Below, piece after piece: positions 61,363 through 62,673 of a stretch of 64,000 bases of DNA. Position numbers and translations under genes: made by a program. The notes under the pieces are model-generated. The model saw only the letters and a list, made by a program, of their open reading frames with translations, made no database searches and was not told the origin of the DNA. The stretch lies in IMG/VR virus record IMGVR_UViG_3300036770_006296, positions 142,618 through 206,617 of that record, one strand, 5' to 3'. Each line of letters starts with the position of its first letter. Within the stretch, counting starts at the first letter, position 1.

Positions 61363-61437
61363 ATGCAACAATTTCTAAATATCGTACAAGTTCAGCTCGA
61401 TCTTCTTGAGGATATTGGAAAGTGTCAGAGGAATTAA
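61363..61437 (+). CDS. attenuator leader peptide 2 MQQFLNIVQVQLDLLEDIGKCQRN
   Basis: 24 codons; CTC GAT CTT CTT GAG GAT run; 3' end complementary to terminator arm. Confidence 0.7.
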   Translation: MQQFLNIVQVQLDLLEDIGKCQRN

Positions 61438-61457
61438 TTGATATAACGATACAATTT

Positions 61458-61486
61458 AAACCTCTGATAACCTCAGAGGTTTTTTT
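61458..61486 (+). terminator. attenuator terminator 2
   Basis: AAACCTCTGA-taacc-TCAGAGGTTTTTTT; 5' arm alternatively pairs with 61423-61431. Confidence 0.85.
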
Positions 61487-61495
61487 GTTTTATAT

Positions 61496-61508
61496 GGTCT
61501 TTGAAATA
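61496..61508 (+). promoter_or_regulatory. boxA-like site
   Basis: GGTCTTTGAAATA. Confidence 0.55.
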
Positions 61509-61516
61509 TTGAAATT

Positions 61517-61601
61517 AGGAATAAGGTAACCACAAACCCACTGGTATTAGGCAGCTCTTGAGATGGAATGCAAGACAGAGCGTAGGTCCTGCCTTATTCC
61601 T
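61517..61601 (+). ncRNA. unclassified structured RNA heading tRNA cluster 2
   Basis: 12-bp terminal stem AGGAATAAGGTA/TGCCTTATTCCT enclosing two hairpins. Confidence 0.5.
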
Positions 61602-61608
61602 TTTTTAT

Positions 61609-61680
61609 GGTCGGTTCATCTAGGGGTCAGGATACAAGGTTTTCATCCTTGTCACACGGGTTCGAATCCCGTACCGACTA
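61609..61680 (+). tRNA. tRNA-Glu(TTC)
   Basis: CAAGG-TT-TTC-AT-CCTTG. Confidence 0.93.
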
Positions 61681-61766
61681 CTACAGCCTGTACCCTTGAG
61701 AAACTCGTATTTAAAGATAAGCAGGTTGGTTACGAAATAAAAGGGTAAGAGAATAAGTAACAAATT

Positions 61767-61840
61767 GGTCCTACAGTCCAGTTGGAGTGGACGCCGCCCT
61801 GTCACGGCGGAGATCGCGGGTTCGAGTCCCGCTAGGACCG
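61767..61840 (+). tRNA. tRNA-Asp(GTC)
   Basis: CCGCC-CT-GTC-AC-GGCGG. Confidence 0.93.
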
Positions 61841-61846
61841 CAATAT

Positions 61847-61919
61847 CGCGGGGTAGAGCAGCTGGTAGCTCGTTGGGCTCATAACCCAAAGGTCACAGGT
61901 TCGAGTCCTGTCCCCGCTA
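61847..61919 (+). tRNA. initiator tRNA-fMet(CAT)
   Basis: C1:T72 mismatch, GGG/CCC anticodon stem. Confidence 0.93.
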
Positions 61920-61990
61920 CTAAGCCCCCATTTCGTACCGTTACTGGATAATATAAATCTAAGTAACGTACGAAATGGAAATAATTTAAA

Positions 61991-62003
61991 GTTCTTTGAT
62001 ATA
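61991..62003 (+). promoter_or_regulatory. boxA-like site within cluster 2
   Basis: GTTCTTTGATATA after long hairpin 61928-61978. Confidence 0.5.
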
Positions 62004-62067
62004 CTTTATTACATCAATTTCAGATTTGGTAGTCTTTCTTGGATATATATACTAAAACGATTGTTTT

Positions 62068-62523
62068 ATGTATAGCAAAAATAAAATATCAGATATAATG
62101 ATAATAGAGGAGATAAAAACAGGAAATACGATGAATACCTGCGCTATTAATCTAGGTATTAAATTTTCGACGTTTAAAAGAAGAGCAATTTTACTTGGTG
62201 TTTATACTCCAAATCAAGGAAGAAAAGGAATTAAAAGAAATCCTAGTGAATTTAATAAAATTACAATATCTTTAGACGATATAATATCGGGGAAACATGA
62301 AGGACATTATACATCTTCAAGATTAAGAAAAAGATTAATTAAAGAAGGATATAAGAAAAATCAATGTGAAGAATGTAATATAAAAGAATGGAACGGGAAA
62401 GAGATAACATGTGAGCTACATCACATTGACGGAAATAGGGGTAATAACAGGTTGGAAAATTTATTAATACTCTGCCCTAATTGTCACTCTCAAACCCCTA
62501 ACCACTCAAAAAGAAATACCTAG
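62068..62523 (+). mobile_element. HNH endonuclease inserted in tRNA cluster
   Basis: CEEC...ELHHIDGNRGNNRLENLLILCPNCH; GATATATA at 62042. Confidence 0.88.
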
Positions 62524-62591
62524 GTACCCCAATTGGCAGAGGGAATAGATTTAGGATCTATAAAGTGAGGGTTCGAGTCCCTCCCTGGGTA
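62518..62591 (+). tRNA. tRNA-Leu(TAG) with short variable loop
   Basis: ACCTAGG/CCTGGGT-A, ATAGA-TT-TAG-GA-TCTAT, 5-nt variable loop. Confidence 0.85.
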
Positions 62592-62599
62592 CACCAAAA

Positions 62600-62673
62600 G
62601 GTCCCTTAGCTCAGTAGGTTAGAGCAACTGACTCATAATCAGTAGGTCCACGGTTCGAGCCCGTGAGGGACCA
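62600..62673 (+). tRNA. tRNA-Ile2(CAT), identical copy of 58489-58562
   Basis: exact duplicate sequence. Confidence 0.85.

Follow-up and report, generated by a model that had tools for sequence, protein, structure and literature searches.

A probable ribosome-mediated attenuator ahead of a phage tRNA cluster, in a family of leader peptides whose codons correspond to the tRNAs behind them

How phages control the tRNA genes they carry, and why these genes are clustered, is to our knowledge largely unknown. In phages such as T4, the clustered tRNA genes are interspersed with unexplained small RNAs and with homing endonucleases, and we know of no leader-peptide control of T4-type clusters. The window analyzed here, a 64-kb stretch of a 206.6-kb phage genome, carries three units of one build, each with a promoter, a short ORF, a terminator, a conserved motif, and tRNAs (Table 1), and we asked what the unit ahead of tRNA cluster 2 does. 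Our answer is that the segment 61313-61511 is probably a ribosome-mediated transcription attenuator that gates cluster 2, followed by a boxA-type site for processive antitermination.

Table 1. Features of the three leader units and of tRNA cluster 2, with positions counted in the window.
Feature	Position	Strand	Remarks
Unit 1	57965..58153	+	precedes Ser, Arg(TCT), Pro, Ile(TAT), Met, and Leu(TAA) tRNAs
Unit 1 putative promoter	57965-57972	+	TATATTTG
Unit 1 leader ORF	58009-58083	+	
Unit 1 antiterminator	58067-58082	+	pairing with 58107-58121
Unit 1 terminator	58105-58136	+	
Unit 1 boxA core	58143-58153	+	
Unit 2 promoter-like element	61313..61332	+	GAAACTTTT-N3-TACTTTTG; upstream of leader ORF 2
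Leader ORF 2	61363..61437	+	24 codons + TAA; ATG 61363, TAA 61435-61437; direct sequence reading
Coding-region hairpin (predicted)	61372..61421	+	possibly a pause hairpin; folds
Regulatory block, codons 12-17	61396..61413	+	CTC GAT CTT CTT GAG GAT (Leu Asp Leu Leu Glu Asp); sequence reading
Unit 2 antiterminator strand	61423..61431	+	UGUCAGAGG, codons 21-23; pairs with CCUCUGAUA at 61461-61469
Unit 2 intrinsic terminator	61458..61486	+	10-bp stem (61458-61467 x 61473-61482), 5-nt loop, U7; strong; just before cluster 2
Unit 2 boxA-like element	61495..61511	+	core TCTTTGAAATA at 61498-61508; follows leader 2 terminator
Structured insert	61517..61606	+	10-bp closing stem then T6, directly before tRNA-Glu; fold
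tRNA-Glu(TTC)	61609-61681	+	ARAGORN, Rfam
tRNA-Asp(GTC)	61767-61841	+	ARAGORN, Rfam; 85-nt conserved spacer after tRNA-Glu
Initiator-like tRNA-Met(CAT)	61847-61920	+	ARAGORN, Rfam
HNH endonuclease ORF within cluster 2	62068..62523	+	Pfam HNH_3 and HNH
tRNA-Leu(TAG)	62518-62592	+	ARAGORN, Rfam
Second tRNA-Met(CAT)	62600-62674	+	ARAGORN, Rfam
Unit 3	63719..63949	+	precedes tRNA-Phe; cluster cut by contig end
Unit 3 putative promoter	63719-63726	+	TACTTTTG
Unit 3 leader ORF	63766-63873	+	
Unit 3 antiterminator	63861-63872	+	pairing with 63906-63917
Unit 3 terminator	63900-63933	+	
Unit 3 boxA core	63939-63949	+	

Leader ORF 2 encodes MQQFLNIVQVQLDLLEDIGKCQRN. Direct reading of the sequence agrees with the original prediction on codons 12-17, on the four Leu codons, which are all CTN (CTA, CTC, CTT, and CTT), and on the content of five Gln and two Val codons. 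The promoter-like element is kept in 7 of 7 leader-2 homologues (alignment A1), and the phage tmRNA is preceded by the same form. Its final 8 nt fit what we take to be the Bacteroidota -7 consensus, TAnnTTTG, making it a candidate promoter. The extended pattern has no second copy in the 64-kb window, and a scan for sigma-70-type promoters found sites no more numerous than in shuffles. The anatomy of an attenuator proposed for this locus, an ORF with a terminator and an antiterminator, was found, and the comparative data below make the case far stronger. The antiterminator strand ends 4 nt upstream of the stop codon (TAA at 61435), and its partner CCUCUGAUA (61461-61469) is the left arm of the terminator; the duplex has an energy of -14.1 kcal/mol. 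The minimum-free-energy structure of the complete leader contains it, as does the fold of a transcript lacking the terminator right arm, and the predicted pairing of the hairpin at 61372-61421 does not involve the antiterminator strand. In the folds, the antiterminator forms as long as the right arm has not been transcribed; masking the footprint of a ribosome at the stop codon yields the terminator instead. No structure sequestering the antiterminator (1:2) was predicted in leaders 1, 2, and 3, so that an untranslated leader is predicted to be read through by default. The notion that failed initiation would leave the antiterminator free likewise fits the folds.

Leader 2 had been expected to be conserved, and its ORF and frame are present in all relatives. 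The homologues are 24, 25, 29, and 30 codons long, and every indel within the ORF in their alignment (3, 12, and 3 nt) is a multiple of three. A CTN CTN (GTG) GAG GAT block is kept in every homologue, with GAGGAT invariant, whereas the remaining peptide varies. The Gln and Val codons lie within a non-cognate N-terminal filler, M-K/N-x-x-x-N-I..., which is common to all small-cluster leaders, and they are not kept in the relatives L003, L001, and L032. The idea that tRNA-Gln or tRNA-Val had been lost from cluster 2 did not survive comparison, as the cluster 2 of relatives never has them, whereas their cluster 3 does. The switch itself co-varies. Among 31 units, the 3' end of the ORF pairs with its own terminator left arm at a mean of -13.6 kcal/mol, compared with -7.8 ± 0.46 when permuted, and none of 20,000 permutations reached the observed value. 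Leader 2 of L032 and L148 carries a three-way compensatory change, from TCAGAG/CTCTGA/TCAGAG to CCGAG/CTCGG/CCGAG. Because the rows of these two are off by one column in the switch region of alignment A1 (MAFFT), the duplex-energy permutation was used for this comparison.

The codons of leader 2 had also been proposed to match the tRNAs of cluster 2. For single leaders, chance was assessed with windows from the genome's own long ORFs, and by this measure leader 2 taken singly is marginal: 7 of 23 codons are cognate (P = 0.24), 3 of 3 classes are covered (P = 0.43), and six cognate codons in a row (P = 0.004) lie just ahead of the antiterminator strand. The composition of the leader-2 family gave P values of 0.13-0.78 against proteome windows. 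What supports leader 2 is that its architecture is shared, that the CTN CTN .. GAG GAT block is invariant, and that indels preserve the frame. By the same long-ORF windows, 13 of the 23 codons of leader 1 are cognate (P = 0.002), 11 of them in a single run (P < 5e-6), and leader 3 covers 14 of 14 decoding classes (P = 0.0003), its cluster continuing in relatives with 14 further tRNAs after tRNA-Phe. From IMG/VR contigs of related phages we assembled 58 units, 31 of them non-redundant. The leaders cover on average 0.97 of the decoding classes of their own cluster, compared with 0.68 ± 0.035 when re-paired, and the precision of their codons is 0.60 compared with 0.41; neither value was reached in any of 20,000 permutations, whose P values overstate independence because the units are phylogenetically related. 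At all 12 loci with at least two units, the own cluster fits the leader better than the sibling cluster does. The proposed match is thus borne out at the level of the family, but not by the cognate count of leader 2 alone.

The correspondence extends to isoacceptors. Individually, 18 of 33 units reach P < 0.05 against proteome windows (Fisher combination about 1e-26, over units that are not independent). Among the codon classes of Leu, Ser, Arg, and Ile, leaders favour the one that belongs to the isoacceptor present (113 vs 30, about 82 expected, P = 3e-8), and the contrast noted originally between CTN in leader 2 and TTA in leader 1 is therefore a general rule. Decoding of CTC and CTT, which belong to a four-fold box, by a U34 tRNA requires extended wobble. 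Where the tRNA sets are split differently (L019, L075, L129, L138, L093, and L149), the leaders follow the split, and L120, which has no tRNA-Ile(TAT), has one ATA codon in its leader compared with three or four elsewhere. The cognate fraction is 0.66 upstream of the antiterminator strand and 0.39 within it. Substitutions inside leader families keep the class in 34 of 109 cases against 18% expected, a modest effect among pairs that are not independent. As many as 18 different tRNA classes appear within 30 leader codons, most by one or two codons each and without the long runs to which classical attenuators owe their sensitivity. This sparse representation, the need for extended wobble, the composition of leader 2, and the absence of a predicted 1:2 structure weigh against attenuation.

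Behind each of the three leader terminators lies a boxA-like element, which the original prediction had overlooked. Its core has only 3 copies in the 206.6-kb genome, each just 3' of a leader terminator, and phage genomes have 1-3 copies of the motif each. A fourth copy of terminator plus motif, at G000 66276 on the minus strand, has neither gene nor tRNA behind it and was taken as unrelated. Across phage units the consensus is TGTTCTTTGACATATTGG; the boxA consensus is AUGAUCUUUGAAA in B. subtilis and UGCUCUUUAACA in E. coli, and the phage core UCUUUGAAA matches the corresponding stretch of the B. subtilis form letter for letter (PMC13753749). In the two Bacteroidota rRNA operons examined in detail, the motif stands before 16S and before 23S, at positions 1074 and 3266 in L171, 126 nt ahead of 16S and 86 nt ahead of 23S, respectively, and at positions 4376 and 6516 in L201. 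The gap from terminator to motif is 3-20 nt across units, and the distance from motif to first tRNA is 7-21 nt, or up to about 110 nt in a few; some units, including both of the cultured Cellulophaga phage phi4:1, have no motif. By its form and placement, the conserved motif is a boxA-like, putative Nus-factor site. Because boxA works at the RNA level and the gap between terminator and motif is too short for a promoter, tRNA transcripts bearing boxA must pass the attenuator.

From the observed anatomy, conservation, co-variation, and codon-to-tRNA correspondence, we infer a mechanism in which the ORF is translated and stalling leads to read-through. Transcription would start at the Bacteroidota-type promoter, and the 24-codon leader would be translated while RNA polymerase nears the terminator. 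A ribosome that reaches the stop codon would cover codons 21-23, allowing the terminator to form, so that transcription would stop short of the tRNAs. Slow passage of the ribosome over the Leu(CTN), Asp, and Glu codons 12-17, or its failure to start, would let the antiterminator pair with the terminator left arm, and polymerase would read through, transcribe boxA, presumably load Nus factors, and copy the untranslated tRNA array. As the tRNAs so produced would decode the sensing codons, the loop would be a negative feedback on decoding capacity, and clusters 1 and 3 would be controlled alike, each through its own set of codons. The phage thus appears to make these tRNAs only when decoding of their codons is slow.

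An attenuator of this anatomy might instead sense general translation status (availability of ribosomes or initiation, or coupling), with the identity of the leader 2 codons irrelevant. The proteome-like composition of the leader-2 family, the non-cognate filler, which makes up half of the leader 2 peptide, and the predicted default read-through without translation would all suit such a sensor. However, it does not account for the Leu-Glu-Asp block kept in all homologues while other residues change, for the six-codon cognate run placed just before the antiterminator strand, for Leu codons that belong without exception to the cognate class, both here and in relatives, or for the specific match of sibling leaders of larger clusters, and we regard it as unlikely. 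That the match is mere chance, or a by-product of AT-rich codon usage combined with an ordinary terminator after an upstream transcript, would agree with the cognate count of leader 2; for the family, chance is rejected by permutation, by the within-genome swap, and by the proteome-window controls. With the reading frame preserved and the antiterminator co-varying with the terminator as well, we consider this reading exceedingly improbable.

Attenuation would not be needed at all if the small ORF and terminator were a separate small gene or small RNA and the TCTTTGAMATA motif were the tRNAs' own promoter. The motif has TTTG at a promoter-compatible distance from the first tRNA, and the leader terminators are strong, but it has no TA of the TAnnTTTG consensus, its scarcity in each phage genome is unlike that of a general promoter, it equals the pre-16S/pre-23S motif of Bacteroidota and resembles the published boxA consensus, and it is missing from some units. 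As this reading also leaves the codon-to-tRNA correspondence and the co-varying antiterminator unexplained, we hold it to be improbable. A terminator and an antiterminator before translation-related genes, controlled by the state of tRNA, are also the layout of T-box riboswitches, which raises the prospect of a ribosome-free RNA sensor of tRNA or of a protein-mediated switch. A T-box, in contrast to the phage units, senses a single uncharged tRNA by direct contact and independently of translation, and its targets are synthetase or amino-acid genes. No T-box (Rfam RF00230; specifier loop, T-box sequence) or other riboswitch matched at E ≤ 1 in 56000-64000, the start codon, stop codon, and reading frame are conserved, and 18 classes in 30 codons would be unreadable by a specifier-loop mechanism; there is very little to recommend this explanation.

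The preferred reading, ribosome-mediated attenuation, has its closest parallels in amino-acid operon attenuators (trp, his, leu, thr, ilvGMEDA, and pheA, as well as pheST for a tRNA synthetase), which likewise have a short ORF with regulatory codons and an intrinsic terminator opposed to a mutually exclusive antiterminator, the 5' strand of which is hidden when a ribosome sits at the stop codon. Multivalent attenuation, with several amino acids sensed together, is likewise a feature of the thr and ilv leaders. In contrast to these systems, the phage units control tRNAs rather than enzymes, so that the sensor would read the product itself; their leaders name as many as 15-18 decoding classes, most of them one or two times, instead of repeating one codon; unlike the trp paradigm, they have no predicted anti-antiterminator; and the element is phage-encoded, with no sequence relation. 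In Rfam, leader families stayed below threshold (Thr_leader RF00506, 24.8 against 55 bits, on leader 1; Phe_leader RF01859, 26 against 55 bits, on the leader 3 terminator), and leader 2 gave nothing but a sub-threshold OmrA-B match (22.4 against 40 bits). The antitermination part resembles the boxA/Nus system of rRNA operons (rrnTAC), sharing the core UCUUUGA, near the B. subtilis consensus (PMC13753749), and standing ahead of long untranslated stable-RNA genes. It differs in that the phage motif, a putative NusB/S10 site, follows a regulated terminator and precedes a tRNA array, and that some units are without it.

It seems likely that these units form an undescribed, widespread class of 'roll-call' leader peptides, with one or two codons per tRNA behind, that switch on phage tRNA arrays by sensing lost decoding per codon class, make exactly the missing tRNAs, and let a boxA antitermination complex of the rRNA type take over polymerase. 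Possible triggers include the action of host anticodon nucleases and the depletion of host tRNAs by the phage. Our search, largely confined to journals open without subscription, found no published description of leader-peptide control of tRNA clusters. If the proposal is true, tRNA genes would be autoregulated through their own decoding activity, a feedback with no counterpart that we know of among the tRNA genes of cells; the reach of leader-peptide attenuation would grow from the sensing of one to three amino acids to that of as many as 18 decoding classes; and separate clusters would be explained by each having its own sensor. Leader peptides could moreover serve as a sequence-only read-out of the tRNAs that share one transcription unit.

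A blastn comparison with the phage collection, with the region and leader 3 as queries, found no close cultured relatives, and neither the crAss-like IAS virus nor Sphingomonas phage PAU has such a leader unit. Phage phi4:1 has two, with leaders covering 7 of 7 and 9 of 9 classes, and makes the idea directly testable; it represents a separate lineage, because its proteins have no tblastn match in the window's genome. No terminase was detected in that genome with PF03237, and the host phylum, which we infer from the promoter and boxA forms only, may be Bacteroidota. In an exact peptide look-up in the protein collection, leader 3 alone of the three leaders matched, to an unnamed entry. Matches in public RNA runs (assembled Logan contigs) were mainly to conserved tRNA parts of other organisms and had no readable 5' or 3' ends.

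Cluster 2 itself has several further features. The second tRNA-Met was left out of the original prediction. With three G-C pairs in the anticodon stem and position 1:72 unpaired, the tRNA at 61847 looks like an initiator tRNA, judged against what we take to be the features of E. coli tRNA-fMet. The structured insert has no Rfam match; it is present in the window and L001 and absent in L003, L002, and L110. RNA-repair-type genes (TROVE/Ro60-like and HAD_SAK_2) lie nearby and, were the proposed control true, would connect the expression of phage tRNAs with tRNA damage or depletion. The HNH ORF is absent in L001, where the two flanking tRNAs adjoin.

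All three tRNA clusters in the window are headed by a module of identical design. A T-rich stretch with a TAnnTTTG element, which we take to be the Bacteroidota -7 promoter consensus, is followed by an A-rich leader of about 25-40 nt, a short ORF (24, 24 and 35 codons for leaders 1, 2 and 3), a terminator whose left arm is able to pair with the 3' end of the ORF, the motif TCTTTGA(A/C)ATA, and the tRNAs. The motif occurs three times in the whole genome, at these sites only. The window is the final 64 kb of a 206.6-kb virus contig (35% G+C; completeness 81% by CheckV) from freshwater and subsurface metagenomes, and it holds two full tRNA clusters and the beginning of a third, truncated by the contig end; complete tRNA genes number 11.

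Reading the sequence of leader 2 bore out the codon content originally predicted: the block at codons 12-17, CTN in all four Leu codons, five Gln codons and two Val codons. The predicted cluster 2, Glu(TTC), Asp(GTC), an initiator-like Met and Leu(TAG), stood for these four tRNAs and left out a second Met(CAT). The same CAT-anticodon tRNA is found in clusters 1 and 2, and it could be either elongator Met or lysidine-type Ile. Leader 1, MNKLINILPSILRPSIRRSRKVLC, precedes Ser(TGA), Arg(TCT), Pro, Ile(TAT), Met and Leu(TAA), and contains three TTA, three ATA and two AGA codons as well as CCN and TCN. The contrast in Leu codons drawn earlier is also present: upstream of the antiterminator strand, CTN occurs four times in leader 2, where TTR is absent, and TTA three times in leader 1, where CTN is absent. 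In leader 3, all 14 decoding classes of cluster 3 other than Met are represented, the content of this cluster being taken from relatives.

Positions of the features discussed, in window coordinates unless a contig is named
Feature	Position	Remarks
Leader ORF 2	61363-61437	product MQQFLNIVQVQLDLLEDIGKCQRN; direct sequence reading
Codons 12-17 of leader 2	61396-61413	CTC GAT CTT CTT GAG GAT
Final sense codons of leader 2	61423-61431	UGUCAGAGG
Terminator between leader 2 ORF and tRNAs	61458-61482 + U7	intrinsic, strong
Left arm of this terminator	61461-61469	
Structured insert, boxA to tRNA-Glu	61517-61606	10-bp closing stem (AGGAATAAGG / CCTTATTCCT) round ~65 nt, then T6
Spacer tRNA-Glu/tRNA-Asp	61683-61765	85 nt
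Hairpin with boxA-like TTCTTTGATATA	61928-62004	-24.9 kcal/mol, z -6.45
HNH endonuclease gene	62068-62523	inserted between initiator tRNA and tRNA-Leu, splitting cluster 2; missing in related contig L001
CAT-anticodon tRNA, two copies	58489-58563, 62600-62674	clusters 1 and 2
RNA-quality-control/repair-type genes flanking tRNA clusters	53988-55613, 58749-59444, 62675-63193	TROVE (Ro60-like), FkbM-type methyltransferase, HAD domain
tmRNA gene	G000:C1:129594-130012 (whole phage genome)	outside window; promoter form GAAACTTTT-N3-TAnnTTTG, as for leader 2
Leader in related contig L138		MKTFSKHMISSKQSQIVIVYRSWSPCGSYDSPKCFIS; before Ser, Gln, Val, His, Arg, Ser, Pro, Ile, Trp, Tyr
Leader in related contig L093		MKKYITYSAGLPETYHNDQPEDNKPLGGISM; before Thr, Tyr, Glu, His, Asp, Asn, Gln, Pro, Leu
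Leader in related contig L149		MRNYMNICDYRNINMNINECEDYISTTG; before Glu, Asp, Tyr, Cys
TTA-anticodon tRNA	L032 9927-9998	ochre-suppressor-like
tRNA-Ser(GCT)-like gene	L001 7986-8072	class II; tRNA clan 38.3 bits, E=1.4e-5
Units of Cellulophaga phage phi4:1	L279 4154-4222, 5114-5197	NC_021788

We compared the leaders with windows drawn from this genome's long ORFs. Leader 1 has 13 cognate codons of 23 (P=0.002) with a run of 11 (P<5e-6), and leader 3 has a class coverage of 14/14 (P=0.0003). Leader 2 gave 7 of 23 cognate codons (P=0.24), a coverage of 3/3 (P=0.43) and a run of six (P=0.004), making it the weakest of the three and insufficient alone. The match between leader 2 and its cluster is thus a correct yet individually weak case of a strong general pattern.

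That pattern emerged from IMG/VR scans anchored on proteins and on the motif, which returned contigs with the same or another tRNA partition. An ATG-started ORF of 15-60 codons was taken as a unit if a terminator followed its end within 70 nt and a tRNA followed that terminator within 220 nt; this yielded 58 units, 31 of them non-redundant, which were scored over 24 decoding classes (three leaders are listed in the table). Mean class coverage was 97% for leaders with their own cluster, complete in 24 of 31 units, against 68 +/- 3.5% when leaders were re-paired with other clusters, and precision was 0.60 versus 0.41 +/- 0.02; neither observed value was reached in 20,000 permutations. At loci with at least two units, representing at least five different partitions, the leader fitted its own cluster better than the sibling cluster in 12 of 12. 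Tested one by one against windows from the proteome, 18 of 33 units gave P<0.05, with a Fisher combination of ~1e-26 that is only indicative because the units are related. Leader 2 is itself kept in relatives: in the alignment of its homologues the block CTN CTN (GTG) GAG GAT is constant while the remaining peptide varies, and ORF-internal indels are all multiples of three (3, 12, 3). Two relatives, L032 and L033, carry a TTA-anticodon tRNA, and both leader ORFs stop at TGA, not TAA/TAG, which may hint at stop-codon reassignment.

The leaders match tRNAs, beyond amino acids. Where a cluster holds only one of the two decoding classes of Leu, Ser, Arg or Ile, the cognate class was used 113 times and the other 30 times, where genome usage predicted ~82 (P=3e-8), so the CTN-versus-TTA remark holds generally. 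The very rare CGN codons occur in leaders exactly where tRNA-Arg(ACG) does, and a cluster 1 without tRNA-Ile(TAT), in L120, has a leader retaining one ATA instead of three or four. Four-fold-box cognate codons end in G in 38% of cases in the 31 non-redundant leaders against 10% in long ORFs of this genome, the only background used. Particular codons may thus be under selection, with rare U34-dependent ones seemingly favoured for sensing. ARAGORN overlooks a tRNA-Ser(GCT)-like gene in L001, so the AGT codons of leader 3 there are probably cognate too. The caveat about the Gln and Val codons of leader 2, with its suggestion of lost tRNAs, fell away on inspection of relatives, in which these codons are replaced and cluster 2 never contains tRNA-Gln or tRNA-Val, both being located in cluster 3. 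The codons in question belong to a non-cognate filler, M-K/N-x-x-x-N-I, found at the start of small-cluster leaders; the cognate fraction is 0.66 before the antiterminator strand and 0.39 inside it.

The final sense codons of leader 2 are complementary to the left arm of its terminator. The minimum-free-energy fold of the whole leader contains the antiterminator and the centroid structure the terminator, indicating two near-isoenergetic alternatives. In leaders 1, 2 and 3 alike, the antiterminator is predicted before the right arm is synthesized, and the terminator once the stretch that a stop-codon ribosome would cover is masked. No structure sequestering the antiterminator strand in untranslated RNA was predicted in these folds, so read-through would be the default state. 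Across the 31 units, the mean energy of pairing between the 3' end of the ORF and the left arm of its own terminator is -13.6 kcal/mol, versus -7.8 +/- 0.46 kcal/mol with the arms of other units (0 of 20,000 permutations reach the observed value), and the pairing strand lies inside the footprint of the stop-codon ribosome in nearly all. In two members of the leader-2 family, L032 and L148, all three strands changed together, from TCAGAG/CTCTGA/TCAGAG to CCGAG/CTCGG/CCGAG.

The motif behind the terminator, with the consensus TGTTCTTTGACATATTGG over the units, resembles boxA and is present only once or twice per related phage genome. The published rrn boxA consensus is AUGAUCUUUGAAA in B. subtilis and UGCUCUUUAACA in E. 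coli (PMC13753749). The exact 18-mer was found at 116 bacterial loci, mostly of Bacteroidota, and in the two rRNA operons examined (L171 and L201) 16S is preceded at 126-170 nt by a copy of the GAAA form and 23S at 86-150 nt by one of the GACA form. These are the classical pair of boxA positions. The motif bears on whether the tRNAs are instead transcribed from a separate promoter of their own. BoxA acts as nascent RNA, and the motif follows the terminator by only 3-20 nt; transcripts bearing it must therefore have traversed the attenuator, which argues against a separate promoter. Some units, including both in phi4:1, lack the motif. The 18-mer extended by (A/T)TTAC(C/A)CG is also repeated in many Bacteroidales intergenic regions (L164, L173, L177, L190, L195, L203, L237 and many others), often ~25 nt upstream of a TAnnTTTG element; judging from these sequences, boxA-like sites may be in wide use outside rRNA operons in this order.

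Given the anatomy, conservation, co-variation and codon-to-tRNA correspondence observed, the best-supported reading is ribosome-mediated attenuation of the classical type, applied to tRNA genes. Each cluster would sense the decoding of its own codons, constituting negative feedback, and past the attenuator boxA-dependent processive transcription would extend through the untranslated tRNA array. We infer that the ORFs are translated and that Nus factors bind, and likewise which way the response goes and to which phylum the host belongs. The device would work like the trp/his/thr/ilv leader-peptide attenuators, but it controls tRNA genes, calls a roll of up to 18 classes in ~30 codons, has no predicted anti-antiterminator and is of phage origin. 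By sequence, the device belongs to none of the Rfam leader families. A T-box was considered and rejected. Within the coverage of the literature searched, we found nothing comparable to leader-peptide control of tRNA clusters.

A cultured example is Cellulophaga phage phi4:1, which has two clear units. It shares no detectable protein with this genome and is of an unrelated lineage. Its unannotated ORF MKIQRLHLQELEQPIISGGTGV precedes Pro, Glu, Gln, His, Leu(TAG), Leu(TAA) and Arg(ACG) and covers 7/7 classes (P=0.0006); hypothetical gp075 precedes Ala, Lys, Ile, Gly, Met, Asp, Thr, Val, Arg(TCT), Met and Tyr and covers 9/9 non-Met classes. The crAss-like IAS virus and Sphingomonas phage PAU, both checked, have no such unit, so the device is not universal.

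The HAD domain beside the tRNA clusters is HAD_SAK_2, from 'Swiss Army Knife' RNA repair proteins; the RNA-repair flavour of the neighbouring genes is consistent with, but no proof of, a function in dealing with the loss of tRNAs. Directly before cluster 2, the structured insert is shared by the window and L001, is not present in L003, L002 or L110, and has no Rfam match; in appearance it is a small RNA or an additional terminator. The very stable hairpin and the boxA-like sequence mark the 5' edge of the HNH insertion. The Glu/Asp spacer is a conserved element that recurs in L053, at an unrelated position between boxA and tRNA-Lys, and in two 364-nt metatranscriptome contigs (X18 and X19).
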